A DNA stretch of 64,000 bases from Cyanophora paradoxa CCMP329. Lineage: Eukaryota > Plantae > Glaucophyta. Positions 7,378-43,565 of the stretch are shown piece after piece. The notes beneath the pieces are model-generated. The model was given only the letters and a program-made list of their open reading frames with translations, was not told the origin of the DNA and searched no databases. The stretch spans positions 44,153 to 108,152 of the forward strand of contig QPMI01000027.1 of the NCBI GenBank assembly GCA_004431415.1, in the 5' to 3' direction. Position numbers and translations under genes: made by a program. Every line of letters begins with the position of its first letter. The stretch's first letter is position 1.

Positions 7378-15586
<8,209 letters not shown>

Positions 15587-16212
15587 AGAGCTAATCGATA
15601 TATATCATGCATTTTCAGCTAGGAATCCTAGGATATCGTCGTCGTATCGATCCGGATCCGGAGTTCGAGGCAGGAAGGGGCCCCGGGGTTGCAATTGGCC
15701 CCCTCCCTTCGCGCCGTTGTTTTCAGCGGCTCGGCGGGGCCGGCGCCGTATACGTGTATATATTATGAACCTAAATTATGCTATTCTATTATAATTATAA
15801 GCTTGTATAGATAGATCTGTATAGATTATATGCATAGCGCTAGCGTTATAGCTAGCTGTAAATTGCAGAGGGCTGCGTGCGCTCGAGCTCGGCAGATCTC
15901 TCGGCAGATCAGCATGCGCAGATCGATATCACTGCCACAGTGTCAGTGTCATATAGCTAGGATACTAGGCTATTCCTAAATAGCTAGTAGCTAGCCCACC
16001 GGCCCTGGAGCTCTCTAGCTGCTCATGATCATCTGGCCATGGACAGCCGCCGGATTCCGAAGTTCGTTCCGACACTCGAGCTCGAGCTCGGCTCGACACT
16101 GCGTCCCCTCCGGATCCCGCGGCCCCCTATAGCTACTTGAGCCGCCGCCCGACTTCGACTCCCCGGCCGTACGCGACCCCGGCCGACTGCGACTGGTGAC
16201 CCGGCAGAAAGT

Positions 16213-22638: not shown

Positions 22639-22960
22639 TTATTTCTGATCCACTCATGATCACGATCAAGCTCTGTGGCGACAGATTAATCTGATCATAA
22701 TGGTGGGCGCTCCGAGCCTCGGAGGCATGCGCATGCGCACTGGGGGCGAGCGATCCTGTTGTCGATGGGTATCCCTTCGAAACATCCCTTGGGTATCCCT
22801 AGGCCTCCTATGCGTGCTGTAGGCGAATCAATCGCGAGGTAGAAATACGGCCCTTCAACTCTTGCAGCGCTAGCCAACAATGCTTCCGCTTGCGATTGTC
22901 CTTGCATCAACTCTTGCAGCCAACAATGCTTGTGCTTGCGATTGTCCTTGCATGCATATA

Positions 22961-25510
22961 AAAGGGCCACTGACTTGCCGCGCGCGTCAGTTGGGTCCGG
23001 GGAAGGGCATTTAACCTCGGCGAATCCAAGATCTAGATGCGCGCATGCAGAGGGCAGCTGCAGGGACTTAAACTAGCGCTTAATTAAGCTTAAGAAGGCG
23101 CGCGCACGGTGGCCGGCCGCGGGCGAGCCGCTGGGCCGGCTCCGGCTGAGGCTGGCCATGCCAGGCGAGCTCAGCGGCTGCAGCTGTCCTCGCGATCGAG
23201 GCGAGCTGTCCTCTTAGAGGTAGGCCTCATGATCGGGGCCTAGCGAGCTAGCTCTAGCTATGTAAGGCGCGGGCCTTGAGAAGGGGGAGGGAACCTTGTC
23301 TGGCCATGGACGTGCTCCAGCTCCTGCAGCTGCCAGGCTGCGCATGCCCCGTGGCCGTCGCGCGCGGAGGCGTGGCGGGTGCACGAGTGCGCATGTGCTG
23401 CGGGTGCACGTGCGTCACGGCGTGGCTACAAAAGGGCCACTGACTTGCCGCGCGCGTCAGTTGGGTCCGGGGAAGGGCATTTAACCTCGGCGAATCCAAG
23501 ATCTAGATGCGCGCATGCAGAGGGCAGCTGCAGGGACTTAAACTAGCGCTTAATTAAGCTTAAGAAGGCGCGCGCACGGTGGCCGGGCGAGCCGCTGGGC
23601 CGGCTCCGGCTGAGGCTGGCCATGCCAGGCGAGCTCAGCGGCTGCAGCTGTCCTCGCGATCGAGGCGAGCTGTCCTCTTAGAGGTAGGCCTCATGATCGG
23701 GGCCTAGCGAGCTAGCTCTAGCTATGTAAGGCGCGGGCCTTGAGAAGGGGGAGGGAACCTTGTCTGGCCATGGCCATGGACGTGCTCCAGCTCCTGCAGC
23801 TGCCAGGCTGCGCATGCCCCGTGGCCGTCGCGCGCGGAGGCGTGGCGGGTGCACGAGTGCGCATGTGCTGCGGGTGCACGTGCGTCACGGCGTGGCTACA
23901 TAGCTAGCTATAGGGGCTGGCCGGCGCCTCGGCCTCCGCGCGATCTGGGCGCGGGCACGGGGACGCTGCTCAAGCTCACGTTCCGCTCAAAAAGCGGCGC
24001 AGCGGGCCAGCTCATGATCAGCGGCGCCGGCTGCATGCGCAGCAGGCATGCGCATCGCGCGCGCGCGGGGGCTCTGCGTCGCGCAGCACGCGCGCCGCGC
24101 TGGCATCGGCTTGTTGGAAGTGGCATAGCCCGCCAAGTGCGGCCGGCTTGCGGCCGGCTTGTGCAATTGCGTCGGGGCGCGGTTGGCGCGGGTGAAGCGT
24201 GCGCGGCTGGCGCGGCTAGCCGCTGAGCCACAGCAAGCTGCCGCGCGGGCGAGAGGCGTAACCATTGTTGAGCCGAGCCGAGCTGCGGCGCCCGGGGAGA
24301 AAGCGGCCGGGGGTACTTTAAGAGGTTTTCTCAGGGTAAGTTCGCACTCTCCAATGTGATTGGCTAGCGCGCGCGGCGTCCTCCCACGCGACCGCGTTCG
24401 CGCCCGGCCTCGCTCTCGCAGTACGGAATGTCGAACATGATGCGCGCAACGACCTCGAACTGGTCTGGCCCGTATATCTGCTCCCTGTGCGTCGCTGGAC
24501 CCATTTTTGTCCCGGGTGTTGGTGCCTGTTCCTGGATCACCCTTTGGTCGGACGGGACCGGGAGACATGGTTTCGGGGTCCCCTGGGGATGCGCTTTCAG
24601 GGTGTACCGCGCGGCCCCGGTTTTGCGGAGGTCGGGGAAATGGGATTTGGGGTAGGGTTGGACCCAAGGGACAGGGACAGGGGAAGTGTTTTACCCTTCC
24701 CCAATAGCTAGCTATAGGGGCTGGCCGGCGCCTCGGCCTCCGCGCGATCTGGGCGCGGGCACGGGGACGCTGCTCAAGCTCACGTTCCGCTCAAAAAGCG
24801 GCGCAGCGGGCCAGCTCATGATCAGCGGCGCCGGCTGCATGCGCAGCAGGCATGCGCATCGCGCGCGCGCGGGGGCTCTGCGTCGCGCAGCACGCGCGCC
24901 GCGCTGGCATCGGCTTGTTGGAAGTGGCATAGCCCGCCAAGTGCGGCCGGCTTGCGGCCGGCTTGTGCAATTGCGTCGGGGCGCGGTTGGCGCGGGTGAA
25001 GCGTGCGCGGCTGGCGCGGCTAGCCGCTGAGCCACAGCAAGCTGCCGCGCGGGCGAGAGGCGTAACCATTGTTGAGCCGAGCCGAGCTGCGGCGCCCGGG
25101 GGAGAAAGCGGCCGGGGGGTACTTTAAGAGGTTTTCTCAGGGTAAGTTCGCACTCTCCAATGTGATTGGCTAGCGCGCGCGGCGTCCTCCCACGCGACCG
25201 CGTTCGCGCCCGGCCTCGCTCTCGCAGTACGGAATGTCGAACATGATGCGCGCAACGACCTCGAACTGGTCTGGCCCGTATATCTGCTCCCTGTGCGTCG
25301 CTGGACCCATTTTTGTCCCGGGTGTTGGTGCCTGTTCCTGGATCACCCTTTGGTCGGACGGGACCGGGAGACATGGTTTCGGGGTCCCCTGGGGATGCGC
25401 TTTCAGGGTGTACCGCGCGGCCCCGGTTTTGCGGAGGTCGGGGAAATGGGATTTGGGGTAGGGTTGGACCCAAGGGACAGGGACAGGGGAAGTGTTTTAC
25501 CCTTCCCCAA
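22961..25510 (-). mobile_element. Helentron/Helitron2-like element (1274 bp, 23431-24704) nested inside a near-identical copy of itself
   Basis: A-A-B-B structure (A 470 bp: 22961-23430, 23431-23900; B ~805 bp: 23901-24704, 24705-25510). Minus-strand 5' hairpin TTGGGGAAG, subterminal GGGGAAGGG plus hairpin at the other end. Both insertions lie between A and T with no TSD. Confidence 0.7.
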
Positions 25511-25697
25511 TGAATTGAATGCTATTGATCATGATACCGCCCATGAATTGCCACCGCCTAACCTAACATCATCGGACGGCCCCGGCCCCCCGAGGTCGGG
25601 ATATCTTCAACCCGTCTTGCAGTCGACGTCGCTATTTGACTTCCAATGCCCGGCAGCATGCAGCGGCCCGGCCTCGAGCTCGCGATCGGTCCTATAG

Positions 25698-28600
25698 CTA
25701 CTGGACATGCGCGACCTCGGGCTCCGCGGCGGCTGCCTGCGGAGGGGGTCGTCGCTGGGGGCGGGGGCGGGGCGGGGCGGGGCCGGGGCACCTCGCGGGC
25801 CTGCGCGAGGTACCTGGCCGCGCGCTGCCGCATGCGCTCGACCAGCTGCGCCACCAGGCTGCGGCGGGGGCTCGGCAGGGCGAGGGGCACGCCCCCAGCG
25901 GCGAGGGCGGCGCGCCTGCAGACTTCGTCGGTGCCCGGGGGATCTCTGCCCCACCTGCTTGGCCACCGCCAGCAGCTGCTCCGTGACCTGCCGCCCCCGC
26001 CCCGCGCCGCGGCAGGTGAGCCGGGCGGGCGCGGGGCGGCGGGGGCGGCGGGGCGGCGGGCGGGCCTGGAGGGTGTTCTTCGCGAGGTCGAGCATGCGGG
26101 CGAGGTCGGGCCACACGGCGCTGTCCCCCTCCGTCGCCTCCGCCTCGTACGCCCTGCCCCGGCCCCGCCCGCTCGGCGACGCGAACATATACACCCACAG
26201 AAGCGAGATCCGCGGACTCCAGGGGCTCGCAGAAGGGGGGGGGGGGGGGGGGGGGGGGGGGAGGGAGGAGGAGGAGGAGGAGGAGCGCACGTGCAGCGGG
26301 CCTCCTCGATCTGGCACTGGATGCGGATGAGCAGCAGCTCGTGGATCACCCGCGAGTCCTGCGCCTCCTGCCGCCCCGCCCGCCCCGCCCCGCCGGCGTC
26401 GGAGGGAGCATGCAGCGGGGGCCGGCTCCGGCGGGGCGGGACCTGCGCCCGCTCGAGGTCCTTCTCCGTGACGTTCGCCCTCTGCCGGCCCGCCGCGTCA
26501 GCGCGCCCCCGCCGCAGCGATCGCGTCGAGGCGCGGGCGGATCCAGGCCGAGGGCGCCCCGAGGCCTCTTCGCGGGGACAGGCGCATGGCAAGGCGGCCG
26601 ACGGCGAATCTCTAGGAAGCGCCCCCGTGCACGTAGAAGGGAGGCGGGGCAGATGAAAGGCAGGCGGGGCGGGCTAGGTCTGGCGTGCGGAGGCGGGGAG
26701 GCGGGGGCGGGCGGGGCGGGCCTCGGCCTGGGAGCGGATGGCGGCGACGTCCTCGCGGTACCGCTGCCGCTCGTCCCGCGACACGTTCCCCACCTGCGGC
26801 GCGGGGGTCGGCGGCGCGGCGGAGGCGAGCGGGGCGGAGGGGCGCGCGTTGGCGCGGCGGAGCTCGAGGGCGGCGACGCGCTCGTAGACGTCGGTGATCT
26901 GCGGGGGCCTCGGGCGCGGGAGAGGAGGGGCGGGGCGAGGGGGCGGGGCGGGCGGACGCGGTCGCGGAGGGAGTCGACGTCGTCGAGGAGCGGCTCGTCC
27001 CCGCCCCCGCCCTCCCCCTGCGGCCCCAGCGGCGCCAGCATGTGCGCCCGGTCCCCGAACCCGCCCCGCGCCCCCGACCGCCGCGCCTGCACCGCGGGGC
27101 TCGAGCGGGGGCAGGGGCGGCGGCGGGGCGAAGAGAGGGCACGGCGCACGCGCTCGACGACCTCCTCGTGGTGCCTGTGGAGGCACTCGAGGAACTCCGC
27201 CTCCGCCTCCGCCCCCGCCCGCTCCTCCTCGCCCCCTTGCGCGGGCGGCGCCGGGCTCGCGCTCGAGCCGGCGCCGCCGGGCCCCGCGCCCTCGCCGCGG
27301 CGGCTGCGGAGGCGGCGCTGTATGCGGCGCCAGGTGTCGGGGAGCCAGCTCCACTCCTTCAGCAGCACGCGGTGCGCGAAGTTCTGCGCCCGCCCGCCCC
27401 GCCCGCCCGTCAGCAGCGCCGAGCCCGAGGCCGAGCGCTCGAAGCGAGCTCAAGCTCGTCGGACAAAGCAGGGGAGAGGGGCGGGGGGCGGGGGCGGGCG
27501 CACGGCCTTGGTGTCGACGCCGCAGGGGCAGCTGAGGCCGGCGCCGTGGCTGCGCTTGATGCGGAAGCCGCGCGCCGCGAACTCCACCGCCAGCAGCGCC
27601 TGCGCGCCCCTGCCCCGTCGCCCACCCACCTCCGAGGCCGAAGCCGGTGCGATCTTTTGAGCGCGGCCCGACTTCTGCTTGAGGGCGTCGGAGGGGGCGG
27701 CGCACGTCGCCCACGCGGAGGAGGTTGTTCTCCCCCGAGTACTCGTCCCCCGCCCCGCTGATGCTGCGCCCGCCCCCGCCCCGTCACACCGCGCCGCCTC
27801 GCTCGCTCGCTCGCTCGCCCGTCAACGGGCGCGCGGGGTCTCGCAGAAGCGCGGGGCCCCCCGGGCACCTGATGAAGCCCTCGGAGGACTGGAGGCCGCG
27901 CACGAAGGCCGGCTCCAGCGGCAGCGTCTGCTCCCCCGCCCCGCCCGCCTCGGCGCGAGGCGCGGGCGGGGCGGGGCGGGCCCGGGGCGGGGCGCGCCTG
28001 CATGCCGAGGTAGCGCGAGGCGCCGTGCTCGACCTTCTTGCGCGTCTGCCGCCGCCGCTCGCGGTGAGCGGCGTCTCGGCGAGGCCGCGGGGCGGGCGGG
28101 GCGGGCGCCTCGGAGAGGGCCTTGAGGGAGGCGCCGGGGAGGGCGAAGTAGAGGTGCGCCGTGAGCAGGAACTTCCTGCGCCGCCCGCCCCGCCCCGCCC
28201 CGCCCGTCAGGGGCCGCCGGCGGGGGCCCCTGGAGGGGGAGGGGCCGGGGGGCACCGGACGCCGTCCCCGAGGAAGACGAGCCGCCCGTGGTGGAAGCGC
28301 CCGTCCCCCTGCGCCCGCCCCGCCCCTCAGCCCCGCCCCGCCCACCCCAGCAGAAGACGCCGGACCGCCCACGGCCGAGCGAGGCGGCTCTCCGTCTCGG
28401 TCTAGCGGGGGCGGGGGCGGGGGCGGCGGGCCTCGAAGCGGAGGGCGGCGGTGAGCCAGTCGGCGTGGGGCCCGGGGCCGGCGGGGAAGCCGAGGTCCTC
28501 GGCGAGCTCCTCCAGCGCCCGACGCAGCATCGGCTCCTGCCGCTCTCCCGCCCCTGCCCCGCCGTCCCCGCACCCTTGACCCGGCTCGCCTCGGCGGGGG

Positions 28601-31600
28601 TGTGTGTGGAGGGGTTGCCGCACGCGGCGCGTTGCAGCGCTCCAGGCGCCCGCCGCCCTGCTTCGAGATGCGCTCCCAGATCCCCGGGCGGTACTGCTGC
28701 AGCCCCTGAGCGGGCCGGGGCCCGGGGTGAGGGGGCGGCGAGCGCGCAGGGGGCCCCTCCCTCGGCGGGGCCCCCCAACCGACCTGCTCGAGGATGAAGT
28801 GTGTGACGAAGGTCGCGGCGTCCATGAGCCCTTTCCTCTCCTTCAGGAAGAGGGCCCCTGCCGCCCGCCCCGCCGCAGAGCCCGCGGCGTCAGAGGGCGC
28901 GGGGGCGGCCGGCCGGGGGGCGGCGCACCGATGACGGCCTCGACGGCGTCGCCCAGCATGGCGTCGCCCTCGGCCAGGCGCTCCGTGTTCCGCAGCAGCG
29001 CCCGCCGCACCCCGAGCCGCTCCGCCAGCTGCCGCCCCGCGGGCGTCGAGGGGCGGGCGGGGGGCGGCGGGGGCGGGCGGGGCGGACGGTGCAGAGGGGG
29101 TCGTTGGAGACGAGGGCGTCGCGCAGGTCGAGCAGCTCGAGCCCCGAGAGCTCCTGGCGGGGCCCGTCGGAGGCCGCTCGGGGTCGGGCGGCGGGGGCGG
29201 GGGCGCACGGGGAGCCAGAGGAAGAGCTTGGAGCGGGCGACGAGCTCCAGCACGGCGTCCCCCAGGTGCTCCAGCCCTGCCCCCCCGCCCCCCCGCCTCA
29301 CCCCGCGCCGCCCCTCCCATCCCATCCCTTCCCCCTCCGATGGAAGCGAGCGCTCTAGGCTCGTGCGCGCTCGCTGCGGGCGTGGATGACGGGGCGCACG
29401 CTCGTTGTCGGGGAGGCCGCGGGGGGCCATCGAGGCGTGGGTGAGGGCCTGCCGCAGCAGCGGGATCTCGTTGATCGCGAAGCGGTCCGCCCCCATCACC
29501 CGCTGCGCCCCGGCCGCGCCCCGCCCGTGAGCCGCCCGGCCGGCGCGCGGGGCCGAAGAGGAGGAGGGGGCGGGCGCCTGGACGTTGGAGACGAAGCCGG
29601 CGACGCCGGCCTCCCAGAAGACCAGCGGGAGCGCCTCCGCCAGCCGCTGCCCGAACAGGAACATCCCGCCTGCGCGCGCGCCCCGCGACGCCCCGTCAGC
29701 GCCCCTTCCGCGCGCCACCCTGTCCACTTCGAAGCGTCAGTTTCGTTGGGCTTGCTAGCACTAGCTCAGGTTCGTTGTGTGAACGTTGCGTCGTGTGAAC
29801 GTCGCGACGTGTGAGCGGCGGGAGGGGCCGGCTCGGGAGGGGCGCAGCGCACTCGTCGCTGCAGTGGGGACCACGAGCTCTGGGAAGGCATCCGCGTGAG
29901 CGGCACCGGCGTCAAAGCGGGCGGCGGCGGGCGGGGGAGGGGGCGGGGCGGGGCGGGGGCAGACCGGGGACGACGTAGTTGACGGCGTAGCCCTCGGGGG
30001 CCTCGTCGGGGCGCGCGTTGGGCGCCGCCTTCACCATGAAGGCCAGCGGCGGCAGTTCCGCGTACTCCAGCGCCCGCGCACGGCTCCTGTACCACTCCGC
30101 GACTGCCCCCCCGCTCGCGTGGCTCTGGCGGGGCGGGGCGGCGCGAGGGGCACGCACAGGTCGGCGGCGCGGAGCTGGAGTGCGCGAGCCCGGGCTTGAG
30201 CTGCGCCGGGGGGGGAGGAGGGGCCTCAGGGCGGCCCAGGGCGCGGCGAAGGGCGGCGGCTCGCCCTGAGCCAGGCCGGCGGCACGCGTTTCCTCGACGC
30301 CGGCTCGAGCAGGGCGCGCGTCACGGGGACCCTGCGAGGCCGGGGCTCGTGCGGAGCGGGGCCGGCTGCGCTGCGCGGGGCGCGCGCGGGCGCACAGGGA
30401 CATCGCGTCGTTGCTCAGGGGCACGACGGCGTGCCCGTGGCCGTCCGCCGGCGGCTCCGGCGCCGGCCGCCCCTGCACCCGTCGGCGTGAGGCCGGCGCG
30501 CAGGACGGAGAGAGGAGGGAGCGATGGGCGCTCGGGCGTCGAGAGCGCAGAGCGGGGGGATGTGGAGGGCGGGCGGACCTTGACGCAGACGCGGTCGTCC
30601 ACCGCCGACGGGCTGCGGGGAGGGGGCGCCGGCCGTGAGCGGGGCGGGGGCTGGGGTGGGGCTAGCGGGGCCGGGGCCGCACTCGGTGCGGACGAGCTCG
30701 GCGGCGGTGCGGTCGGAGCGGTACGCGAGCATCAGGGCGAGCGCCTCGAAGTCGACCTCCTCCTCCCGGCCCCTGCCCGCCGAGCCGCGCACCGTGAGGG
30801 CGCCCCGAGGGAGTGCGCCGCGAGGCGGCGCGCGCGGGGCGCACCGGAAGGCCGGGACGACAAAGCACGGCTCCTTGTCCGGCGTCGTCGTCGGGAAGGG
30901 CGGCAGCGGCCGCGGGGCCTTCGCCCCGCAGAACTTGCGCTGCGCCGCGCCGCCCGCCCCGATCCGCCGCGCTGCTCGGGGCGGCAGGTGCGCGGGGGGC
31001 GGACCTGGAAGTCGGAGAGGACGCGGATCTGCTCGGGGGAGAAGAGCAGGCGGTGGCCCGCCTCCGCTTGCTGCGCCCCACCCGCTCGCCTCGAGGAGTG
31101 GCGCGGGAGCGGGCGGGCGCGGGCGAACGTGGACGGTAATGCGCGTCGGCTGGCGCGGCGCGTCCCACCGGGAGTCCTGCAGCTGCGCACGCGCATCAGG
31201 CGCACGGCGGACGGCCAGGGGCAGGCGGCCCCTCTACGCTCCAAGCTGGCCCTCCTAGGCCTGCCGGCAGGGCGGCCCGGGTGCTGGGGAGGGGCGGGGA
31301 GGGCAGGGCGGACCAGGACGTCGCGGGTGATGGTGAGGCGGGTGGCCGCCAGCAGGTGGAACCCCACAAAGGCCCGGCTGCCCCGCCCCCTCCCCGTCAG
31401 TGCACTCCCCCGCAAGCACCGGAGTGCGCCTTGTGTTCTTCGTGCACTGCGGGGAGGGCGCGGGGCGGGGGGCACCTCCCGAGGTGCTCGTGGAAGCGCT
31501 CCTCGACGGGCGGGTCGAACTCGACGCGGTGCAGGTACAGCGGCTGCCGCCGCGCGCGAGCTGGTCACGCGAGCGGCGGCCCCGACGGGCGGGCCCCGGC

Positions 31601-34600
31601 CGCACCTTCCCGCCCAGCGCCGGCCCCGGGGGCGCCGCCGTCTCTGTCCTCGCCTTCTTGCGCGCCGGCGGCGGCCCGCCGGCGCCCCGCGGCCGGCCGG
31701 CTTCGGCCTCGCCTGCGCCGGCTCGGGCGCCGCCAGGCGCTCCAGCAGCTCCTCCGGCGTCCGCGCCGGCGGCCGCTCCCGCCCGGCGCCGCCGCCTCCG
31801 AGCCGGCCGGCTCCGCGGCGGCCTCCTCCGAGCCCAGGCCGTCCCCCATCTCGACGTCGGGGCCCAGCCGGCGCCCGGCCCCTCCTCCTCATCGACCTCC
31901 TCGTCGCCGCTCGCCCCGCCCCGCCCCTCGAACTCCTCCTCCTCCTCCCGCCTCCGCCGCTTGCGGGCGGCGGGGGCCTCGGGGGCCCCGGCTCGCGCGG
32001 CGGCCTCCTTCGCCTCGGCCTCTTCGGCGGCGATGATGGCGTCCCGCTGCGCAATCCTCGCCGGGTCCACAGCTGCGTTCCGCCCGAAGTACCGCCCCTG
32101 CCCCGCCGCCCGCGCCTGCGCCCCCGCCCCCGCCCCCGCGTCAGCAACGGCGCTCGAGTGCGGCGAGGGCGGGCGCACCCGGTTGGGCCGGTCGCGGAGG
32201 GGGCGCGCGAGGATCTCGTCCCGGCGGGCGAGGAGGCCCAGCACGGGCGCCGGCGCCGGACCCGGCGCAGGCGGGCCGACCGCCCTTGTCCCGCCCCGCC
32301 GGCGCCGGCGGGGCCGCGGCGCTGTCGCCCTCGGGGCAGGTGCCTCCTGTGGAGATTCGCCCTGCGGGCGGCGGGGCGGGGGGAGGGCGGGGGAGCGGGG
32401 CGCGGGAGCGACGTGGCGCTCAGGTGCTTCAGAAACGCCATCGCCTGCGGGGCACAGGGTCAGGCGAGGGGCGGCTCGGGGTGGGCAGGAAGCCCCTCGC
32501 CTTGCTGGAGATCTTGAAAGGAAGCGGCGCCGCCGCAGCGGTCCCTGCGGGGGCCACTGACCGCCCCGCCAGAGGCAGGCCGGCGGCGGAGGGCGGCGCG
32601 AGGGCTGCCGGCGCTTCGGGAGTCGAGGCGGGAGCCGTGGAGTCCGTCGAGCTGGCCTCGAGCGGCCCGTTGGCCGCCGCCGGCCCGCGCGCTGCCGGCG
32701 CGCCCGTCGCAGCGGCCGGCAGCGGCGCTCTCCGCTCTACTGGCTCGGAGGCAGGCGCGCCTGCGGCAACGGCTGGTGCGGCGGCAGTGGCGCCCATTGC
32801 CGGCCCATCTGACGGCGGGATTGAAGGCGGTGGAGCTTGAGGCTCAGGCGAGCGTGGCGAGCGTGCGTCAGCGGGGGCCGGGGCCGAGCGAGGGGCCACG
32901 CGAGCCTCGGGGGCGGGAGAGGAGCCGGAGGCGGGGGCGGGCGGCGCCGGGGAGGACGAGGAGGGAGGCGAGTGCCGTCTGGACTTCTTCGCAGCCGCCC
33001 CCACCTCGTCGTCGTCGGAGGAGGATTCGGGCGGGGGGGCCGCTGAAGGCGCCCCCGGGGGAGGCGACGGGCGCCCCGAGGCCGCCGGCGGGGCGGGGCG
33101 GCGAGGGGACGGAGGTAGGGCCCCCTCCTCTTCCGAGGACTCGTCTTGCAGAGCTGCTGCGGGCGGCGGGGGCCGTCAGACCGACCGCAAGAAGGTAGGC
33201 TCAGAGAAGGGGGCGGGGCCCCGGCCGGCGCGCACCGCCCGGGCGATCCGCCTCGCGCGGGGCGCCCTCGCCCCGCCCCTGCTCCTCGCCCCTTTGCTGC
33301 TCGCCCTCGCCCTCGCCCTCGGAGTCCGAGGAGGGGGGCGTGACGGGGGAGCGCGGGGGCGAGCGCGGGGGCGAGGGGTCGTCCCGCGGGGAGGCGCCGC
33401 CCCAGTCGTCCTCCCCGAGGCCCTCGCCCCAGTCCGACATCGCCCGGGGGCGCCCGGCGTGCTCCCCCTCGTCGTCGGAGATGACGACCGCGACGCTCCC
33501 CTCGAACATCTCCTCCATGAAGTCCTGCGCCCGCGCCCCGTCACCCCGCCCCGCCCAGCTGCTTCTCCAAGATGCGGGGGCGCGCACCTCGTCGAGCTCG
33601 AGGTGGGAGCGAAAGCCGGCGCGGGGGGCCGAGCCGGGGCGCGACTCCTCCGAGGAGCGCCGCTGGGGCGCGGGGTGCGAGGAGGAGCCGGGGGAGGGCG
33701 GCGGCAGGGGCAGGGGCGCGTTGGAGGAGGCCGACGAGCGGGGGGAAGGGGAGGGCGACGGCGAGGAGGAGCGCCGCCCGCGCTGCGAGGCCCGCTTTGG
33801 CGTCGGCCCCGAGGGGGAAGAGGCGGCGGCCGACGGGGGCCCCATGGCTGCCGACGAGGAGGAGGAGGAGCGGGGGGAGAAGAGGGCGCCGGGGGGCTTG
33901 GAGGCCGCGGCCGGGGCCGGGGGAGGCGCGGGGAGGGTCCCCTGGGAGGGGGCGACGAGCAGGCGCGTCCCCGACACGTACTCGACCTGGCGGGGGGCGT
34001 GAGAGAGGTGGGGGGGGGAGAAGAGGGAGGGGACGCTCCGGCCCCGGCACCTTCTTGATGACGACCTTGACGTCCTGAAGGGGGTCGTCTGGGCGGGGCG
34101 GAGGAGTGAGCGGGGGAGGGGAGAGGAGGGGAGGCGGGGGCGGCGGGGGGCACCGGGGGTCCAGCCGCGGGCGGCGATTCGGGAGCGGTACTCGAGGCGC
34201 TCGCGCTCCCGGCGCTCCGCCTCCTCCGCCGCCTCCTCCTCGTCCCCCAGCGCGTCCTGCCCCGCCCCCGCCCCTCAGACGCAGCCCCGCGCAGCCCAGC
34301 AGCACGCGCCGCCGCTGCGGCGCGCTTCGAAGCGGAGGGGGCGCGGGCGGGGGCACCGAGGGGCGGGCGGGGGCGGGGCGGGGGCGGAGTCGTCGCCGAG
34401 GGGGCCGGCGAGGGCGGTGCGGTAAAGGACGGGGCGGGCCCCCTCCAGCGCCTCCGGGGGGACCGACGGGCCCGCCCCCCGGTCGATCACGAAGCCCGGC
34501 GACTCCTCCGCCCCCGCCGCCCCGCCCTCGCCCGGCGCCGAGGCAGACGCCGCGGCCGGCGCAGGCGCGTCGCCCTCGGGGGTCGGTGGGCGGGTTGCGA

Positions 34601-37436
34601 AGGGGCACGCGGGGCGCCAGGCCGGGCCGGCCGGGCGTGGAGGCGTTGGCGCCCGTGGCGGGGGCGCCCTGGGGGCCCTGGGCGCCCCGGGGCCGCTTCT
34701 TGAAGCGCTGGACGAGGCGCGCGAACTGCGGCAGCGCCTTCTCCGTGCGGGCCTGCGGGAGCGCGGTGAGCCCGCCACAAGCGCCGGCGGCCCCGGAGGC
34801 TGCCCTGCACGCGCACCCGGACGCTCTCCTGCAGGCGGACCTCGTCGGGCGCCAGGGCGCGCGCCCCCGGCGGCAGGTCCGCCCGCAGCCCGTCCTGCGT
34901 CATGTACACCTGCGCGGGGGGGGTCAACGTCGCCCGCCGTCTGGGGGCGGGCAGGAAACGCGGCTGCCCCACCTCCCCGATGGCCGGCGACTCGTCGGCG
35001 CGGCGGTCCTCCTGCGCGCCGCAGCCCTCAGCAAAGCACATGCAGCGCGGGGGCGGGCGTGAGGAAGGCGGGGCGCAGCGCACGGGGCCGTAGCGGTCGT
35101 TGTGGAGGGCGCGCAGGGACGGCTCCCCCGTGGCGAGGTCGAAGAACTCGTGCGGGCGCACCAGCTGGATGCGAACCTGCGCGGAGGTGAGGGGCGGGAG
35201 AGGAGGGCGGGGATGGGGCGGGGCGGACGGCGCCGGCGGCGTCGCGGGCGGCGAGGCGGAGCTCGTCAACGTCCACGTGCGCGCCCTTCGTCCGCTGGCC
35301 CCACCACGCCACGAACACCCGGTAGCTGGCCCCCGCCCCGCCCCCGCTCAGGCCCCCGCGGCGCCTCCAGACGCCCGGCGGGAAGCAGGGCGGGGCGCAC
35401 TTGTGGTTGCGGAGGAGGCGGACGGCGCGAAGGTACTGGAGGACGATCGTCGCGTTGTCCAGCGAGCCGGCGTCCGGGCACAGCCACACCTGCGGTTCCT
35501 CGCCTCTCTGAGAGGGCGCCGCCCCGGCAGGGGGCGGGAAGGAGCGCCTCGTCGGGGTCCTCGTAGCGGAGGATGGCGCGGAGGGTCTGCGGCGACCCCG
35601 CGAAGTCGCCCCCGTGCCCGCTGCCCCGAAACAGGCTCGACGGGAGGGGCGCGCGGGGGGGGGGGGGGGGGGGGGGGGGGGGAAGGAGGGAGGCGTCGGT
35701 TACACACATGCCGGCGCCAACGAAGAGCAGACCGAAGTGCGAGGCGGCCACGAACGACTTCACGATGCCCTCGCTCAGGCACGCGACCTGCCGGGGGTAC
35801 AGGTCGGGCTGGGGAGAGGGGGGCCGATGGGGGAAGAAGCGGGCCTTGACGAGACGGCGAGTGGCAGGGCAGACAAGGGTCGAGGGGGGTACGGCGTCCG
35901 CCTCCCCCTCCTCCAGCATGGTGCGCCACACAGCGAGGGGCGTCTCCTGCGGCGAAAAGGTCGAAAAGAACGCGGGAGTAGGGGCAAGGGGTGTGAGGGA
36001 GGGCGTGAACCCCGTTCTGGTGCAGGCGGTAGCACGGCTTTTCGTTCTTCTTGCCGGGGGTATCATATTTGGGATCTCCGAGGGGGAGCCTGCGGCGGCG
36101 CGGGGCTCAGGGGGGGCGCGGGGCGGACCCCAGGGGTACGCGCACATGATGATGCACGTGTTTATGTTGCCGTGCACGTCGAGCACGGGGAAGAAGACTG
36201 CCGGGCCCTGACGTCCGGCGTGAGCCCAGGAGAGGGGTTGCGGGAGGGGTTACCCCGTTCGGAATGCCGTGGTGCACGATTGTCTTCCGCCGCTCGTCGA
36301 TGAGTACCCCCGGCAGGTAAGGGTCCACGTGAGCGTGGGCCGGGACCGGCTGCGGGGAGGGAGTCGGCTGGCCGGGAGCGGGCGAGGGGCGGCGGCGGGG
36401 CCGCCGGGGCGGGGCGGAGGGGTAGGCGCCTCGAGGGCCGGCCAGGTCTTGATGTGGTGCCAGCCCTGTACGCGCTGCATCCACTTCCAGGAGCAGCCGC
36501 GGGCCCGCATCGCGATCTTCCCGACCTGGGCGAACGTTCGCCCGCCCGGCTCGAATGGCGGGGCGGGGCGGGGCGCGGGGCGCGGGGGCGCGCGCCTCGT
36601 TGAGGCCGAGCTGCGAGAGGAGGCGGATGTACATCTCGTGGCGCTCGGGCTCCGGGATGAGCTCGCCCTGCGCGATGCGGGCCGAGGGCCGGCGCCCCGA
36701 CGAGAGGATCTTGATGAACTTGTTCTCGTGGGAGCCCGTGTCGGGGATCCGCGACATCTGCTCCCGCACTTCCCGCACCATCTCGATCACCTGCGGCACC
36801 TCCAGGCGCTCCTCTGCGCAGGATTCGATCCGGGCAGGGCGCCGGGCGGCACTGAGCTTCACTCACTTTCGCGCCGTTTGTCCTTGCAGTCGTTGTCGCG
36901 ACACAGCTCCAGCATGTAGTTCGAGTGGACGAACACTTCGCACACGCTGTCCATCGTGTTGTGCCTTTTGGGCGGGTTCGAGAAGCAGTCTGCGTCAGGC
37001 GATGTCAGTGGTGCGCAGCGGCGCGATGCGCGTCCGAACGACGGAGCGCACATGCTTCTGGCACCGAGCGGAAGTAGTAGCGAAGCTTCCCCTGCCCGCG
37101 CTCCGCATCAGCCGCGAGCGCTTGTTACGTGCGGCGGCGCTGCAGGGGCGGGGCAGTGACCGCGAGCGGGTTGAAATGAACTTCCTTCGCTTTGAGATCG
37201 AAGAAGTTGCAGGGCGGCAGGCCGGCACGCTGGCGCTTGCATTGCAGCTCGTGCTTCAGCCGAAAACCGATGTCTTTCACTAGCTCGAGAAATTGATCCG
37301 GGAGCGCGTCGACGAACTTGCCCTCGCGCTTGAGCTCGTCGGGGTTGGGCTCTGCCGGCCAGCGGGGCGCTTCCGGTGCACGCTCATCGGCGGAGGCCCG
37401 TGAGTGCGACGGCCCGCTGGGTCCTGGCAGCACCAT
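25698..37436 (-). CDS. Dicer-like protein: Zn-finger/primase-TOPRIM N-terminus, long disordered linker, platform-PAZ-connector, RNase IIIa, degenerate RNase IIIb, helical C-terminus (many exons)
   Basis: RIIIa: LLRQALTHAS..NE|RLEHLGDAVL..MLGDAVEAVI|GALFL. RIIIb: HGRLVFLGDGV|RKFLLTAHLYF..VGD|ALLAV. Platform/PAZ-like: PLYLHRVEF, FSPEQIRVLSDFQ, CFVVPAF..EEVDFEAL, WYRSRARALEYAELPPL, LAEALPLVFW. TOPRIM: CLSEGIVKS, WLCPDAGS, AWWGQRTK..DVDEL. The single-gene model is inferred from an uninterrupted same-strand exon chain. Confidence 0.7.
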
Positions 37437-37530
37437 GTCGACGTCGCCTCAACAAAGCCAACACATCGGATCGGATCGGTGGCTCTGCCTTGGCTCGCCA
37501 GGCTCGCCTGATCGATGCGTCTACCCCCCG

Positions 37531-38752
37531 ATGTGGAGCGCCGACGAGTCCCAGGATCCCGATCCGTTCTTTGAGGCGGCCGATGATGCGGAGGTGCCAG
37601 CACCAGCGTTCGCACCCGCGGCACCGGAGCCCGGCGCTAGCGCGGACCCGAGCGACGTCGATGTCTCGCGGGACGACGTGCGTGCACTAGCGGCGCCTAT
37701 GTTCGGCGCGCGATGATGGCGCTATATCTCGCAGATCATCGCCCGCATCGAGGCCCTGACAGAAGGCGTCGTTCGCGGCTTGCTTGGCGGTCAACTCTTT
37801 GCGCTCAGAATCGTCCGCCGAGCGCGCGCGCGCGCACGATTGAGAGATTCCTTTCGCGGTGCCGTTGACCAATGCGCCAGCCTCTGCGGAACAGGGGAAA
37901 CGTGCAGCTCCGGCAGGAGGGCGGATACCAACTGGGCCAGGCGGTGCGCGCGAGCTCTGGGCCCGAGTCGCCCTCTCCTCCTGTCCCTGACACGCGCTGA
38001 CGACGAGCGCGCAAAGACGAAGCTCGTCGAGTGCAGCCCGAGCAACGCCGCCCATTACGTGAAGTGTACGCGGTGTTTTCCCGAGCGCTTTCCAGGCGCC
38101 GGCTCGCACATGCATCGGAGTCGGATGCTTCGAATTCGACAGATTGGAAGGTCCTGGACGCGATTGTGCGGCTGCTCCGGAGCGGGAAGAAGGCTGCGCA
38201 GCGGGACCTGTGTGAGCTTTCCCAACCCGCTGCCCGTAGGATGAATTCGGATTGGACTGTGACCCCGCGCCCTGCCCAGACTACATGCTCGTCGACTCGT
38301 TCCGGAGCCAAACCGAGATCAACGAGATCGTCCAAGGTGCGCGCGCAGCTGCAGGCGTTTAAGGAGAATGTGGCACGGTGCGGTTCCCAACTTCCTGGCC
38401 GCCGGTGGAGACCTCGCGGCGATGCTGCGGTGCTCGCGGCACGCCCTCGGGATCGTCGCGAGCTCCCGCGGCTTCGTAGCCGGCCGCCTCCTCTGGCGGG
38501 CGCGCCGCACCACCGAGCTTCCCCTTCCCCCTTCCCCTCCACCCGCCTCGACGTTCCCCGCAGGACGACCCCGACTCTTCCTGGGTCGACTGCTCGCGCC
38601 TGGGTACCCCCTCTCCAGCGGCCGCCCCGGGCCTGGCATGTGAAGCCTCCACCCGCAGGCGCCACGGGCCGGGCCATCCCCGGCGACCTCGACCTCATTC
38701 GCGGCGCCGAGTGCGATCCCAGTACCCCTGCCCGCAACGCGACGTACCCCCT
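37531..38752 (+). pseudogene. SPO11: 5' fragment of SPO11-2 truncated by the duplication junction
   Basis: Identical to the first exons of 41338-43565 (includes QRDL|YY) and cut inside an intron before the TOPRIM domain. Confidence 0.85.
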
Positions 38753-41243
38753 CAACGTCGCCCGCCGTCTGGGGGCGGGCAGGAAACGCGGCTGCCCCAC
38801 CTCCCCGATGGCCGGCGACTCGTCGGCGCGGCGGTCCTCCTGCGCGCCGCAGCCCTCAGCAAAGCACATGCAGCGCGGGGGCGGGCGTGAGGAAGGCGGG
38901 GCGCAGCGCACGGGGCCGTAGCGGTCGTTGTGGAGGGCGCGCAGGGACGGCTCCCCCGTGGCGAGGTCGAAGAACTCGTGCGGGCGCACCAGCTGGATGC
39001 GAACCTGCGCGGAGGTGAGGGGCGGGAGAGGAGGGCGGGGATGGGGCGGGGCGGACGGCGCCGGCGGCGTCGCGGGCGGCGAGGCGGAGCTCGTCAACGT
39101 CCACGTGCGCGCCCTTCGTCCGCTGGCCCCACCACGCCACGAACACCCGGTAGCTGGCCCCCGCCCCGCCCCCGCTCAGGCCCCCGCGGCGCCTCCAGAC
39201 GCCCGGCGGGAAGCAGGGCGGGGCGCACTTGTGGTTGCGGAGGAGGCGGACGGCGCGAAGGTACTGGAGGACGATCGTCGCGTTGTCCAGCGAGCCGGCG
39301 TCCGGGCACAGCCACACCTGCGGTTCCTCGCCTCTCTGAGAGGGCGCCGCCCCGGCAGGGGGCGGGAAGGAGCGCCTCGTCGGGGTCCTCGTAGCGGAGG
39401 ATGGCGCGGAGGGTCTGCGGCGACCCCGCGAAGTCGCCCCCGTGCCCGCTGCCCCGAAACAGGCTCGACGGGAGGGCGCGCGGGGGGGGGGGGGGGGGGG
39501 GGGGAAGGAGGGAGGCGTCGGTTACACACATGCCGGCGCCAACGAAGAGCAGACCGAAGTGCGAGGCGGCCACGAACGACTTCACGATGCCCTCGCTCAG
39601 GCACGCGACCTGCCGGGGTACAGGTCGGGCTGGGGAGAGGGGCCGATGGGGAAGAAGCGGGCCTTGACGAGACGGCGAGTGGCAGGGCAGACAAGGGTCG
39701 AGGGGGGTACGGCGTCCGCCTCCCCTCCTCCAGCATGGTGCGCCACACAGCGAGGGCGTCTCCTGCGGCGAAAAGGTCGAAAAGAACGCGGGAGTAGGGG
39801 CAAGGGGTGTGAGGGAGGGCGTGAACCCCGTTCTGGTGCAGGCGGTAGCACGGCTTTTCGTTCTTCTTGCCGGGGGTATCATATTTGGGATCTCCGAGGG
39901 GGAGCCTGCGGCGGCGCGGGGCTCAGGGGGGGCGCGGGGCGGACCCCAGGGGTACGCGCACATGATGATGCACGTGTTTATGTTGCCGTGCACGTCGAGC
40001 ACGGGGAAGAAGACTGCCGGGCCCTGACGTCCGGCGTGAGCCCAGGAGAGGGTTGCGGGAGGGGTTACCCCGTTCGGAATGCCGTGGTGCACGATTGTCT
40101 TCCGCCGCTCGTCGATGAGTACCCCGGCAGGTAAGGGTCCACGTGAGCGTGGGCCGGGACCGGCTGCGGGAGGGAGTCGGCTGGCCGGGAGCGGGCGAGG
40201 GCGGCGGCGGGGCCGCCGGGGCGGGCGGAGGGGTAGGCGCCTCGAGGGCCGGCCAGGTCTTGATGTGGTGCCAGCCCTGTACGCGCTGCATCCACTTCCA
40301 GGAGCAGCCGCGGGCCCGCATCGCGATCTTCCCGACCTGGGCGAACGTTCGCCCGCCCGGCTCGAATGGCGGGGCGGGCGGGGCGCGGGGCGCGGGGGCG
40401 CGCGCCTCGTTGAGGCCGAGCTGCGAGAGGAGGCGGATGTACATCTCGTGGCGCTCGGGCTCCGGGATGAGCTCGCCCTGCGCGATGCGGCCGAGGGCCG
40501 GCGCCCGACGAGAGGATCTTGATGAACTTGTTCTCGTGGGAGCCCGTGTCGGGATCCGCGACATCTGCTCCCGCACTTCCCGCACCATCTCGATCACCTG
40601 CGGCACCTCCAGGCGCTCCTCTGCGCAGGATTCGATCCGGGCAGGGCGCCGGGCGGCACTGAGCTTCACTCACTTTCGCGCCGTTTGTCCTTGCAGTCGT
40701 TGTCGCGACACAGCTCCAGCATGTAGTTCGAGTGGACGAACACTTCGCACACGCTGTCCATCGTGTTGTGCCTTTTGGGCGGGTTCGAGAAGCAGTCTGC
40801 GTCAGGCGATGTCAGTGGTGCGCAGCGGCGCGATGCGCGTCCGAACGACGGAGCGCACATGCTTCTGGCACCGAGCGGAAGTAGTAGCGAAGCTTCCCCT
40901 GCCCGCGCTCCGCATCAGCCGCGAGCGCTTGTTACGTGCGGCGGCGCTGCAGGGGCGGGGCAGTGACCGCGAGCGGGTTGAAATGAACTTCCTTCGCTTT
41001 GAGATCGAAGAAGTTGCAGGGCGGCAGGCCGGCACGCTGGCGCTTGCATTGCAGCTCGTGCTTCAGCCGAAAACCGATGTCTTTCACTAGCTCGAGAAAT
41101 TGATCCGGGAGCGCGTCGACGAACTTGCCCTCGCGCTTGAGCTCGTCGGGGTTGGGCTCTGCCGGCCAGCGGGGCGCTTCCGGTGCACGCTCATCGGCGG
41201 AGGCCCGTGAGTGCGACGGCCCGCTGGGTCCTGGCAGCACCAT
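38752..41243 (-). pseudogene. Duplicated 5' part of the Dicer-like gene (Zn-finger + primase/TOPRIM module only)
   Basis: Copy of 34924-37436 with frameshifting 1-bp deletions around 39480-40560. Confidence 0.75.
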
Positions 41244-41337
41244 GTCGACGTCGCCTCAACAAAGCCAACACATCGGATCGGATCGGTGGCTCTGCCTTGG
41301 CTCGCCAGGCTCGCCTGATCGATGCGTCTACCCCCCG

Positions 41338-43565
41338 ATGTGGAGCGCCGACGAGTCCCAGGATCCCGATCCGTTCTTTGAGGCGGCCGATGATGCGGAG
41401 GTGCCAGCACCAGCGTTCGCACCCGCGGCACCGGAGCCCGGCGCTAGCGCGGACCCGAGCGACGTCGATGTCTCGCGGGACGACGTGCGTGCACTAGCGG
41501 CGCCTATGTTCGGCGCGCGATGATGGCGCTATATCTCGCAGATCATCGCCCGCATCGAGGCCCTGACAGAAGGCGTCGTTCGCGGCTTGCTTGGCGGTCA
41601 ACTCTTTGCGCTCAGAATCGTCCGCCGAGCGCGCGCGCGCGCACGATTGAGAGATTCCTTTCGCGGTGCCGTTGACCAATGCGCCAGCCTCTGCGGAACA
41701 GGGGAAACGTGCAGCTCCGGCAGGAGGGCGGATACCAACTGGGCCAGGCGGTGCGCGCGAGCTCTGGGCCCGAGTCGCCCTCTCCTCCTGTCCCTGACAC
41801 GCGCTGACGACGAGCGCGCAAAGACGAAGCTCGTCGAGTGCAGCCCGAGCAACGCCGCCCATTACGTGAAGTGTACGCGGTGTTTTCCCGAGCGCTTTCC
41901 AGGCGCCGGCTCGCACATGCATCGGAGTCGGATGCTTCGAATTCGACAGATTGGAAGGTCCTGGACGCGATTGTGCGGCTGCTCCGGAGCGGGAAGAAGG
42001 CTGCGCAGCGGGACCTGTGTGAGCTTTCCCAACCCGCTGCCCGTAGGATGAATTCGGATTGGACTGTGACCCCGCGCCCTGCCCAGACTACATGCTCGTC
42101 GACTCGTTCCGGAGCCAAACCGAGATCAACGAGATCGTCCAAGGTGCGCGCGCAGCTGCAGGCGTTTAAGGAGAATGTGGCACGGTGCGGTTCCCAACTT
42201 CCTGGCCGCCGGTGGAGACCTCGCGGCGATGCTGCGGTGCTCGCGGCACGCCCTCGGGATCGTCGCGAGCTCCCGCGGCTTCGTAGCCGGCCGCCTCCTC
42301 TGGCGGGCGCGCCGCACCACCGAGCTTCCCCTTCCCCCTTCCCCTCCACCCGCCTCGACGTTCCCCGCAGGACGACCCCGACTCTTCCTGGGTCGACTGC
42401 TCGCGCCTGGGTACCCCCTCTCCAGCGGCCGCCCCGGGCCTGGCATGTGAAGCCTCCACCCGCAGGCGCCACGGGCCGGGCCATCCCCGGCGACCTCGAC
42501 CTCATTCGCGGCGCCGAGTGCGATCCCAGTACCCCTGCCCGCAACGCGACGTACCCCCTAACCTTGAAAATTGCAGGCTCGACGTGCAGGACGCGCGGTG
42601 CCTCGTCGTCGTCGAGAAGGACGGCATTTTCCGTACCCCCGACCCCGCCGTCGCGCTCGCGTACCCCGCGCCCGCTTATTTACCGTACCCAGAGTGGCTG
42701 TCCGAAGAGCGCTTCTTCGAGAGCGTCCCCTGCATCCTCGTCACGGGCAAGGCGAGCCGTACCCCGTCCCTTCTCGGCATTCTCGCATACCCTTTTATCG
42801 CGGAACAGGGGTACCCCGACCTCGCCACGCGGTGCACTGGCCTGGGTCTAGTCCGCGCTCGCTGTGAGCCTCTTTCTGATCGGGACCGGCTTTGCCTTCG
42901 GGCAGCGCTCTCGTGCACCGGTGAGACTCTACGGACCCCCCGAACCTTGCAGTGCCACGCCCGTCCGACGCACCCCCCGCAGCCTCCACTCCGAGTTCGG
43001 ACTGCCCGTCCTCGGCCTGGCCGACTACAACCCGTGCGCGTACCCCCTTGAGCCTCAACTCTTCCCCATCTTTATCTGGACGTGCAGCCACGGCCTCCAG
43101 CTGTTGCTTACGTACAAGCTGGGAAGCGCCCGCATGGGCCACGAAGCCTTCCGCTTCGGCGCGTACCCCCGCCAGGCTCGTCTCCCTGCCCCTCAAGATC
43201 TGAGCTCTTGCGTGCAGTCGTTGACTTGAAGTGGGTGGGCCTTCGGGGGGACGACCTATGGGACCTGGGGCTGCCCCCGGAGTGCTCCCAGCCGCTCTCG
43301 GACAGGGACCGCCGCGCGGCGCGCCTGCTCCTCGCCACGCCCTTCGTGCAATCGAGCCCGGCGCACCGGGACGAGGTGGAGCGCATGCTCGAGGGCGGCA
43401 GAAAGGCGCGCCGGGCGGGGCCCGCAGCAAGCCCCAGCGGCCCCACTTTTTGAACAATTTCGTTCCGATTCGCAGGTGGAGCTGCAGGCGCTGCACTCGA
43501 AGGGGTACGGCTTCCTCGGGAACGAGTACCTCAAGCCCCGGATCCTCCACGGCGCGTACATCTAG
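41338..43565 (+). CDS. SPO11: Meiotic recombination protein SPO11 (SPO11-2 type), spliced
   Basis: AAQRDL|YYMLV (catalytic Tyr), LGIVASSRGFVAG, LVVVEKDGIF, PCILVTGK|GYPDLATR, GLADYNP|HGLQLLLTYKLGSARMGHEA, VELQAL; ends HGAYI* (TAG 43563-43565). Confidence 0.95.

Follow-up and report, generated by a model that had tools for sequence, protein, structure and literature searches.

A single nuclear gene on the minus strand, running from ~37436 to ~27700 and encoding a protein of ~2000 aa with an N-terminal primase-type module and a C-terminal Dicer-like nuclease, is the reading that we favor for this region, with a probability of about 0.6. The window, i.e. the whole stretch of 64,000 nucleotides that was analysed, originates from the glaucophyte alga Cyanophora paradoxa, and public protein models were those of EukProt EP00741. 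In the original prediction, a primase module took the place of the Dicer helicase in a gene that also encodes two RNase III domains. This structure holds well, and all parts would be translated as one protein; the fusion at this locus we infer, because no single RNA contig joins 35.3 kb to 29.3 kb. The primase-Dicer combination was absent from the searchable literature.

Two C. paradoxa protein models are referred to below. P0001, a stand-alone protein of 506 aa, is the only public model at the locus and maps to 41243-38698, in the truncated second copy of a tandem duplication; the gene-model search found no public model for the Dicer half of this locus. P0002 (1999 aa) is a diverged paralogue with 31% identity in which finger, primase core, low-complexity linker and RNase III follow each other in one public gene model. 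The features of the region are given by window position:

38752-42562, minus strand: tandem duplicate of 34924-38756 (self-comparison, 99.4% identity)
37161-37436, minus strand: first coding exon with the ATG at 37436, corresponding to residues 1-92 of P0001 (exact peptide mapping)
36868-37091, minus strand: two exons with a Cys-His-Cys-Cys zinc finger, C-x7-H-x19-C-x4-C at 36987-36886
36310-36811, minus strand: exons joining the finger to the primase core, including the block FAQVGK..HIKTW (36564-36412) that is conserved in the paralogue
35084-36198, minus strand: seven exons of a DnaG-type primase core, N-terminal subdomain plus TOPRIM (phmmer, AlphaFold, Foldseek, VIA-align)
34753-35011, minus strand: small exon 35011-34973, followed by a predicted 220-nt intron (34972-34753) with donor and acceptor both in phase 0
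31606-34752, minus strand: low-complexity Ser/Pro/Ala/Glu-rich linker of ~880 codons (RNA contigs, GT-AG introns)
29852-31605, minus strand: middle domain made of exons of 35-96 nt (RNA-confirmed introns, open chain)
28924-29668, minus strand: RNase IIIa (partial matches to Pfam PF00636/PF14622 on an exon-bearing ORF, translation)
27784-28536, minus strand: degenerate RNase IIIb (translation, P0002 match), ending with an in-frame TGA at 27786-27784
25698-27783, minus strand: region of the proposed helical tail, beyond the ends of the RNA contigs and not colinear with the P0002 tail

The primase core contains the motifs SEG..K, GxGG.F, PDAG..N, WWGQ..K and DVDE. With phmmer, 379 homologues of the core were retrieved, mainly bacterial proteins of 1000-1300 aa, some of which belong to the CyRepA1 family. 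E values against bacterial proteins ranged from 2e-15 to 1e-7, and some of these proteins, P0003 and P0009 among them, carry the NCBIfam CyRepA1 domain; in P0003 (E 2.3e-15), the match is located N-terminal to that domain. When bacterial relatives were used as tblastn queries, matches within the window were confined to the exons between 36198 and 35084, and nothing in the window matched their helicase halves. The family-invariant E, K, D, N, Q, K and D-x-D are retained in both Cyanophora proteins. Among 36 sequences, few or no exchanges occur at E76 (SEG), D127 (the single Asp of PDAG) and D169/D171 (DVDE), which are candidate equivalents of the acidic metal ligands of DnaG.

The AlphaFold model of the core (pLDDT 75, pTM 0.71) gave DnaG, T7 gp4 and T4 gp61 as top Foldseek matches with a probability of 1.00. 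In VIA-align, comparison with B. subtilis DnaG yielded a Z of 11.4 and an rmsd of 3.8 for 178/216 residues. The DnaG match covers the whole model, whereas generic TOPRIM proteins (Z 7-8) match its C-terminal part only. The 379 phmmer homologues and the DnaG-like RNA-polymerase-domain fold thus bear out the proposed TOPRIM/primase module, which is of the cyanobacterial plasmid kind. From the primase half, neither individual exons nor the ORFs that contain them found a match in Pfam, PHROGs or NCBIfam, nor did the spliced model P0001 in Pfam or PDB; single-sequence AlphaFold of P0001 reached a pLDDT of 40.

CyRepA1 and CyRepA2 are cyanobacterial plasmid replication proteins in which an N-terminal DUF3854 Toprim-related domain is combined with a DEXDc helicase (PMC10079941). 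The N-terminal domain of CyRepA1 proteins is homologous to residues ~279-471 of P0001, and the family-invariant residues are all shared. In contrast to the CyRepA1 proteins, the Cyanophora proteins lack the helicase/CyRepA1 domain and possess a Cys-His-Cys-Cys finger that none of the 151 bacterial matches contains, and the Cyanophora gene is intron-rich and nuclear. Pfam DUF3854 left the Cyanophora proteins unmatched and matched 2/36 family members, weakly. With NCBIfam no match was obtained for P0001 and RNase III only for P0002; CyRepA1 was absent from both. The best explanation is that the primase module was derived from cyanobacterial plasmid replication proteins of the CyRepA type, specifically from their N-terminal domain; the bacterial helicase half was lost, and a long disordered linker and the Dicer-like nuclease took its position. 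With DnaG-type primases (DnaG, T7 gp4, T4 gp61, mitochondrial Twinkle) the modelled core appears to share the RNA-polymerase-domain fold (Z 9-11.4). Judged from sequence, the Cyanophora protein likewise seems to have a zinc-binding element before the core and acidic residues at TOPRIM positions. It differs from these primases in (i) a core identity of just 12-20%; (ii) a finger that is not a CHC2 ribbon by Pfam; (iii) a DxD that reads PDAG; (iv) the absence of a helicase-binding or helicase domain.

The predicted zinc finger was located as the four-ligand pattern C-x7-H-x19-C-x4-C at 36987-36886. Only P0001 and P0002 contain the pattern among the 153 proteins retrieved. It aligns colinearly, though weakly (E 0.038), to the paralogue finger (C-x6-H-x20-C-x4-C), and Cys and His are in register. 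Pfam, zinc-ribbon families included, gave no match to the finger, and an atlas match to Zn_Ribbon_Prim scored 0.80, which is chance level and a lead only. The UL52/PrimPol-type zinc finger of human PrimPol reads C-x6-H-x19-C-x4-C. Its ligand spacing is almost the same as that in the window, a likeness of pattern with homology unconfirmed by any tool; in PrimPol/UL52 an archaeo-eukaryotic primase domain comes before the finger, whereas in Cyanophora the finger comes before a DnaG-type core. A hand-built finger exon starting at 37057 was discarded, as the paralogue alignment backs the small exon 37091-37053 of the public model. In this copy, homopolymers at 36354, 36386, 36411 and 36565 contain surplus G's that disrupt the frame between finger and core.

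Downstream of the linker, the middle domain is colinear with P0002 residues ~1190-1530 in short matches, and a frame slip is found in a C-run at 29917-29967. In the tblastn search with P0002, run with filters off, low-complexity matches dominated and few short colinear matches were usable. The platform, PAZ and connector that had been assigned to this part were not confirmed by Pfam, PDB or atlas, even with the full-length paralogue: Pfam returned no PAZ at E<=10 in P0002 1100-1999 (the window exons are too short for single-exon searches), and the PDB sequence search and atlas features of the Dicer region detected RNase III alone and no PAZ. Of the two RNase III domains foreseen, IIIa has an intact signature, NER/LEHLGD (exon-split) ... 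GDAVEAVIGA at 29502-28924, in which residues of the catalytic type appear to be present. It matches P0002 1540-1560, within a domain that exceeds the Pfam threshold. The second domain is present and degenerate, with HGRLVFLGD in place of ERLE.LGD (RLVFLGD at 28284-28264) and SSEGFIRC in place of D..E. P0002 shows two RNase III stretches above the Pfam threshold and an equally degenerate RNase IIIb. Three RNA contigs of the Dicer half stop 1289-1365 spliced nt below 29968, and the mRNA end was therefore placed near 27.6-27.8 kb, just past the in-frame stop at 27786. The helical tail postulated at 27.4-25.7 kb is probably not part of the gene; the P0002 tail had no colinear match in 25698-27783, which is probably a separate downstream gene.

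Canonical Dicers have an N-terminal DExD/H helicase and a C-terminal dsRBD, both of which are missing in minimal Dicers. As in Dicers such as Arabidopsis DCL1 and Giardia Dicer, two tandem C-terminal RNase III domains follow a non-catalytic middle region. The Cyanophora protein differs from Dicer in that (i) DExD/H helicase, dsRBD and a detectable PAZ are missing; (ii) RNase IIIb is devoid of catalytic glutamates; (iii) its N-terminal part combines a primase module that includes a zinc finger with a disordered linker of ~880 aa. The expected absence of helicase and dsRBD agrees with the Pfam searches, in which no such family was found in P0001, P0002 or the window ORFs.

The predicted minus-strand chain of small exons is substantiated by spliced RNA contigs from three runs with at least 12 GT-AG or GC-AG introns, and at least 12 of the introns in the RNA contigs listed are missing from a DNA run. 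These contigs tile nearly the entire span, and the assertion that there is no intergenic-type gap is nearly true; among the RNA contigs listed, 33847-34495 and 32337-32496 are uncovered. The linker itself is transcribed and spliced (RNA contigs, GT-AG introns) and has the anticipated S/P/E-rich composition, with A in addition. Its RNA contigs are 34751-34496, 33846-33587, 33514-33236^33156-32915, 32881-32497 and 32336-32178^32114-31606, and further exons are predicted at 34256-34154, 34088-34051 and 33986-33847. A joint in the RNA contigs lies at 34751/34752. GC3 peaks in the predicted frame of the linker, codon-position GC is consistent with the predicted frames, and two RNA-supported inserted G's restore a linker frame.

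Alternatively, the region might comprise two or three separate minus-strand genes whose read-through or overlapping transcripts mimic continuity, with a stand-alone gene for a zinc-finger/primase-like protein up to ~34.3 kb, a Dicer-like gene from ~32.4 kb onward and perhaps a gene for a low-complexity protein between the two. We consider this unlikely, although several observations fit it. No contig bridges the linker among the RNA contigs listed from the three runs, contig depth falls 2- to 5-fold from the flanks to the linker (11-20 versus 2-8), and a TGA at 34277, inside the uncovered stretch 33847-34495, is in frame unless the predicted intron is spliced. ATGs are found at 33845 and 32441; the latter is in good context and could start a Dicer-only product, and over 32444-32295 an RNA contig and the window differ by two bases at sites that are not listed exactly. 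At a G+C content of 79%, frames easily stay open by chance, and gene prediction may have joined neighbouring genes, in the P0002 model as well. That P0001 is a stand-alone protein of 506 aa also fits this reading, but this model describes the truncated copy, and the primase-side RNA contigs of the copy considered here reach at least 34496, past the P0001 model end. The coding-like exons at 34256-33847 do not have an ATG of their own (none occurs between 34903 and 33845, i.e. in 1058 nt of coding-like linker), and the spliced linker includes an ORF of 469 codons that is open in one frame only. RNA-confirmed introns excise the stops of both adjoining frames, and the primase and Dicer halves have equal contig depth in each of two runs (10.9/10.9 and 15.3/16.0). 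Moreover, the 31%-identical paralogue retains this domain order within one 1999-aa model that is colinear with the window.

Even if the fusion is real, its primase-like module may have ceased to polymerise. It may instead be a domain of the TOPRIM type that binds nucleic acid or works as a metal-dependent nuclease, guides the RNase III part to ssDNA or RNA ends and does the sensing in place of the lost helicase. This reading appears somewhat unlikely. TOPRIM also occurs in topoisomerases, OLD nucleases and RecR, folds which score Z 7-8; the DxD of DnaG reads PDAG across the whole family; and the related DUF3854 domain of CyRep proteins has no known function (PMC10079941). Against these points, primases rank first among the fold matches, and these matches extend to the N-terminal subdomain, a part missing from topoisomerases; the core has a zinc finger in front of it, like true primases; and both paralogues keep all residues that are invariant in the bacterial relatives. 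It is very improbable that the fusion is an artefact of the long-read assembly, caused by a mis-join or a falsely expanded repeat. The window assembly does contain many homopolymer-length errors that break frames, and the primase half is present twice because 34924-38756 is repeated in tandem at 38752-42562. All differences between the copies of this 3.83-kb unit (17/17) concern homopolymer length, with 0 substitutions, and the second copy carries the promoter region and the primase half. However, independent DNA and RNA contigs (2012-2020) cover the region piecewise with 0 other letters, and a DNA contig of an independent run departs exactly at the duplication breakpoint, 34924, which falls within the predicted intron 34972-34753; the second locus with identical domain order likewise speaks against an artefact. 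Upstream of the duplicate, at 42.5-50.6 kb, ORF-level Pfam searches detected no PIWI or Argonaute, a weak test given the small exons there.

For the single primase-Dicer gene that we favor, a tentative and on balance doubtful mechanism can be envisaged, in which a family of Cyanophora primase-Dicer enzymes uses a captured cyanobacterial plasmid replication domain to make silencing RNAs directly from DNA in an RdRP-free manner. Zinc finger and primase core would bind single-stranded nucleic acid, most likely ssDNA arising from R-loops, replicating invaders, transposons or breaks, and the core would lay short complementary RNAs on the bound strand. RNA forming duplexes with nearby transcripts would then be cut by the tethered RNase III module, which might work as a dimer or a nickase given one active site per chain (IIIb being dead). 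The resulting small RNAs could feed the Argonaute pathway, and no RNA-dependent RNA polymerase would be needed. That RNA is made on DNA templates and supplied for dicing is conceivable by inference only. To our knowledge, Dicers carry either a helicase or nothing at the N-terminus, and we know of no DnaG-type primase that feeds an RNase III. In C. paradoxa itself, genes for Argonaute and RdRP are present and small RNAs are abundant (PMC3700990). If true, a complete primase module on a Dicer-like enzyme would represent a new way to choose or create RNAi substrates and would link DNA, in the form of replication intermediates, R-loops or foreign replicons, to small-RNA production. A lineage at the base of plastid-bearing eukaryotes would also have captured a replication domain from bacterial plasmids, furnished it with introns and remodelled it as a eukaryotic silencing gene.

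Phylogenetic analysis did not group the two Cyanophora primase modules, both of which are on very long branches, and a single clade of the two was not rejected by the AU test (p 0.41). C. paradoxa has at least two genes of this type, one of them within the recent tandem duplication.

Exon-by-exon searches of the N-terminal half of the locus against Pfam, PHROGs and NCBIfam gave no match, nor did Pfam and PDB searches with P0001, a public 506-aa model of Cyanophora paradoxa (EukProt EP00741 tig00000128_g7221.t1) identical to the exons of this half. An exhaustive phmmer search with P0001 yielded 379 matches at E<=1e-3, the conserved part comprising residues about 279-471. The majority were bacterial proteins of 1000-1300 aa. 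Two of the bacterial relatives, P0003 and P0009, have an NCBIfam CyRepA1 plasmid-replication domain C-terminal to the region matched by P0001, and the cyanobacterial P0007 combines a CHC2 finger with an origin-binding-protein helicase. CyRepA proteins reportedly consist of an N-terminal DUF3854 (Toprim-related) domain followed by a DEXDc helicase (PMC10079941). The Pfam DUF3854 model matched weakly in only two of 36 family members, and in neither P0001 nor its C. paradoxa paralogue P0002.

Alignment of the 36 sequences revealed the motifs L.EG.LKP, GAAGG.FA.SP, PDAG..N and WWGQ..K...DIDEL; every invariant residue is retained in P0001 and P0002. The first structural matches of an AlphaFold model of the core derived from this alignment (pLDDT 75, pTM 0.71) were DnaG RNA-polymerase domains, T7 gp4, T4 gp61 and Twinkle; Foldseek gave E 1.6e-5 and a probability of 1.00. 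In VIA-align, B. subtilis DnaG (Z 11.4, rmsd 3.8, 178 of 216 residues) was followed by gyrase and topoisomerase TOPRIM domains (Z 7-8), which covered residues about 57-216 only. The stronger and fuller match to DnaG argues for more than a TOPRIM fold, and the predicted assignment of the module as a DnaG-type primase core is well supported. The primase-like or TOPRIM identity proposed in the original prediction is thus borne out by homologues, invariant residues and predicted fold.

Upstream of the core, a C-x7-H-x19-C-x4-C pattern (36987-36886) was confined to P0001 and P0002 among 153 retrieved proteins. The two fingers align weakly, with ligands in register. We take the spacing to resemble that of the UL52/PrimPol finger; an atlas lead from the finger to a primase zinc ribbon scored at chance level.

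In the nuclease half, the RNase IIIa signature residues are intact (NER/LEHLGD, LVSN, GDAVEAVIGA). RNase IIIb reads HGRLVFLGD and SSEGFIRC and therefore lacks the glutamates, a loss shared with P0002. The proposed platform/PAZ found no support in the middle domain from Pfam, PDB sequence search or atlas features. An in-frame TGA at 27786 and the lengths of three RNA contigs suggest that the mRNA ends near 27.6-27.8 kb, so that the 'helical tail' placed at 27.4-25.7 kb is probably part of another gene rather than of the Dicer-like one. The following features lie in and beyond this stretch.

Features at the downstream end of the locus
25698-27783, minus strand: protein-like helical exons, e.g. 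AEFLECLHRHHEEVVERV and QITDVYERVAALELRRA, probably a separate downstream gene
23900-25511: tandem repeat, ~806 bp x2, 99.8%
22957-23900: tandem repeat, ~470 bp x2, 97%, adjoining the former

P0002 (C. paradoxa tig00020510_g9828.t1, 1999 aa, on a different contig) was the top match of P0001 (E 3.8e-17, 31% identity). Its order is finger, primase core (about 400-520), low-complexity linker of ~600 aa, middle region, a first RNase III (1539-1684, above the Pfam threshold) and a degenerate second RNase III. Short colinear matches connect it with the window, and the primase exons of the window likewise align with it.

Colinear matches between P0002 (residue) and the window (position)
1190: 31534
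1221: 31382
1540: 29460
1596: 29114
1745: 28284
1813: 27891

An identical domain order at two loci diverged to 31% identity favours a fused gene over chance neighbours, with the caveat that P0002 is a predicted model and GC-rich DNA is prone to merged gene predictions. In the tree the P0001 and P0002 modules did not group, both branches being very long; a single clade of the two was not rejected by the AU test (p 0.41).

Three RNA runs (X1, X2, X4) and one DNA run (X9) were compared with 29401-35400. RNA contigs omitted segments of 55-183 nt which, read on the minus strand, start with GT (twice GC) and finish with AG; the DNA was unspliced. Each RNA run contained a ~2.4 kb contig that spans ten listed introns; its upper end lies at 31909-31922 and its lower end 1289-1365 spliced nt below 29968.

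Further RNA contigs
31883-32114 joined to 32178-32336
32497-32881
32915-33156 joined to 33236-33514
33587-33846
34496-34751: two contigs, 1092 and 1997 nt, both running on upstream over the splice acceptor at 34752

The 1997-nt contig has a further 1739 nt that are not among the pieces listed; this length is close to that expected for the N-terminal coding part. Among the contigs listed, none covered 33847-34495 or 32337-32496.

The region has 78-80% G+C, so long ORFs crowd every frame and ORF lists alone carry little meaning. Exons were chained computationally for stop counts and codon-position G+C, while searches used the spliced public models P0001 and P0002. RNA contigs from three runs each carry one extra base at 31674, 31777, 31858 (also in a DNA contig), 34587 and 34601. 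These single-base deletions of the window shift reading frames, and the assembly has homopolymer-length errors; a further frame slip in the C-run 29917-29967 is best read as another.

Exon 35011-34973 is followed by a phase-0 donor, matched in phase by the acceptor at 34753. In exon 34752-34357, two protein-like stretches share one open frame only when two RNA-supported G's are added. Across the RNA gap, exons 34256-34154, 34088-34051 and 33986 onward are predicted from canonical sites with matching phases. A TGA at 34277 would fall inside the first of these introns (69-nt GC-AG or 100-nt GT-AG), and G+C at codon positions 1/2/3 of 34256-34154 is coding-type (0.86/0.56/0.97). The minus strand contains no ATG between 34903 and 33845, so no separate ORF can begin in these exons. 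Once the RNA-confirmed intron 33235-33157 is removed, just one frame is open between 33986 and 32501, over 469 codons; the intron takes out a stop of both the preceding and the following frame. A 56-nt GC-AG intron (32500-32445) agrees with an RNA contig end. No frame path was assigned across 32444-32295, because RNA contig and window differ there by two bases at unlisted positions. The corrected sequence is open from 32294 to 31606 through the RNA-confirmed intron 32177-32115. Between 31070 and about 29990, the chain of exons defined by RNA reads through without a stop and looks protein-like.

A 3.83-kb tandem duplication (34924-38756, recurring at 38752-42562) has its breakpoint 34924 within the intron between exon 35011-34973 and the 34753 acceptor. 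The copies differ at 17 sites, all lengths of G- or C-runs, with no substitution. The upstream copy carries a truncated, primase-only gene; it is this shortened copy that P0001 models, its final exon lying just beyond the junction (38727-38698). In the 2012 run, a DNA contig departs from the window exactly at 34924, so the junction is present in independent data.

The domains and their order (finger/primase core, linker, middle domain, RNase IIIa, RNase IIIb) are real. That they form a single gene is likely, at about three in four: same-strand spliced RNA, open frames and the paralogue's order speak for it, but no RNA contig listed from the three runs over 29401-35400 bridges the primase-to-Dicer span. 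The flanking contigs were equally deep in two runs (10.9/10.9 and 15.3/16.0) and the linker contigs less so (2-8); equal flank depth weakly favours one gene, contig depth being a poor measure. An ATG in good context at 32441 could give a Dicer-only product. A single primase-Dicer protein might, as proposed, couple RNA synthesis to dicing. In the draft genome, Gross et al. (2013) reported a single BLAST match to AtDCL1, its architecture undescribed (PMC3700990), and the literature searched contained no paper in which a Dicer is joined to DUF3854 or to a primase domain.

A Pfam search of ORFs upstream of the locus (42.5-50.6 kb) returned no PIWI or Argonaute domain, a weak negative given how small the exons are in that part. 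Elsewhere in the window, the following features were observed.

Other features
117-1534 and 13938-15592: direct repeats ~14 kb apart, three blocks, 94-98% identity
49933-50634, minus strand: ORF barely above the Pfam MAP10_N cut-off (E 1.9e-4, 21.9 versus 21.5 bits)
50826-52282 and 54404-56200: nested inverted repeats, arms <=321 nt, 91-100% complementarity

The inverted repeats build a large palindrome at about 52-54 kb, which adjoins the replicon-like region noted earlier at 56-63 kb.
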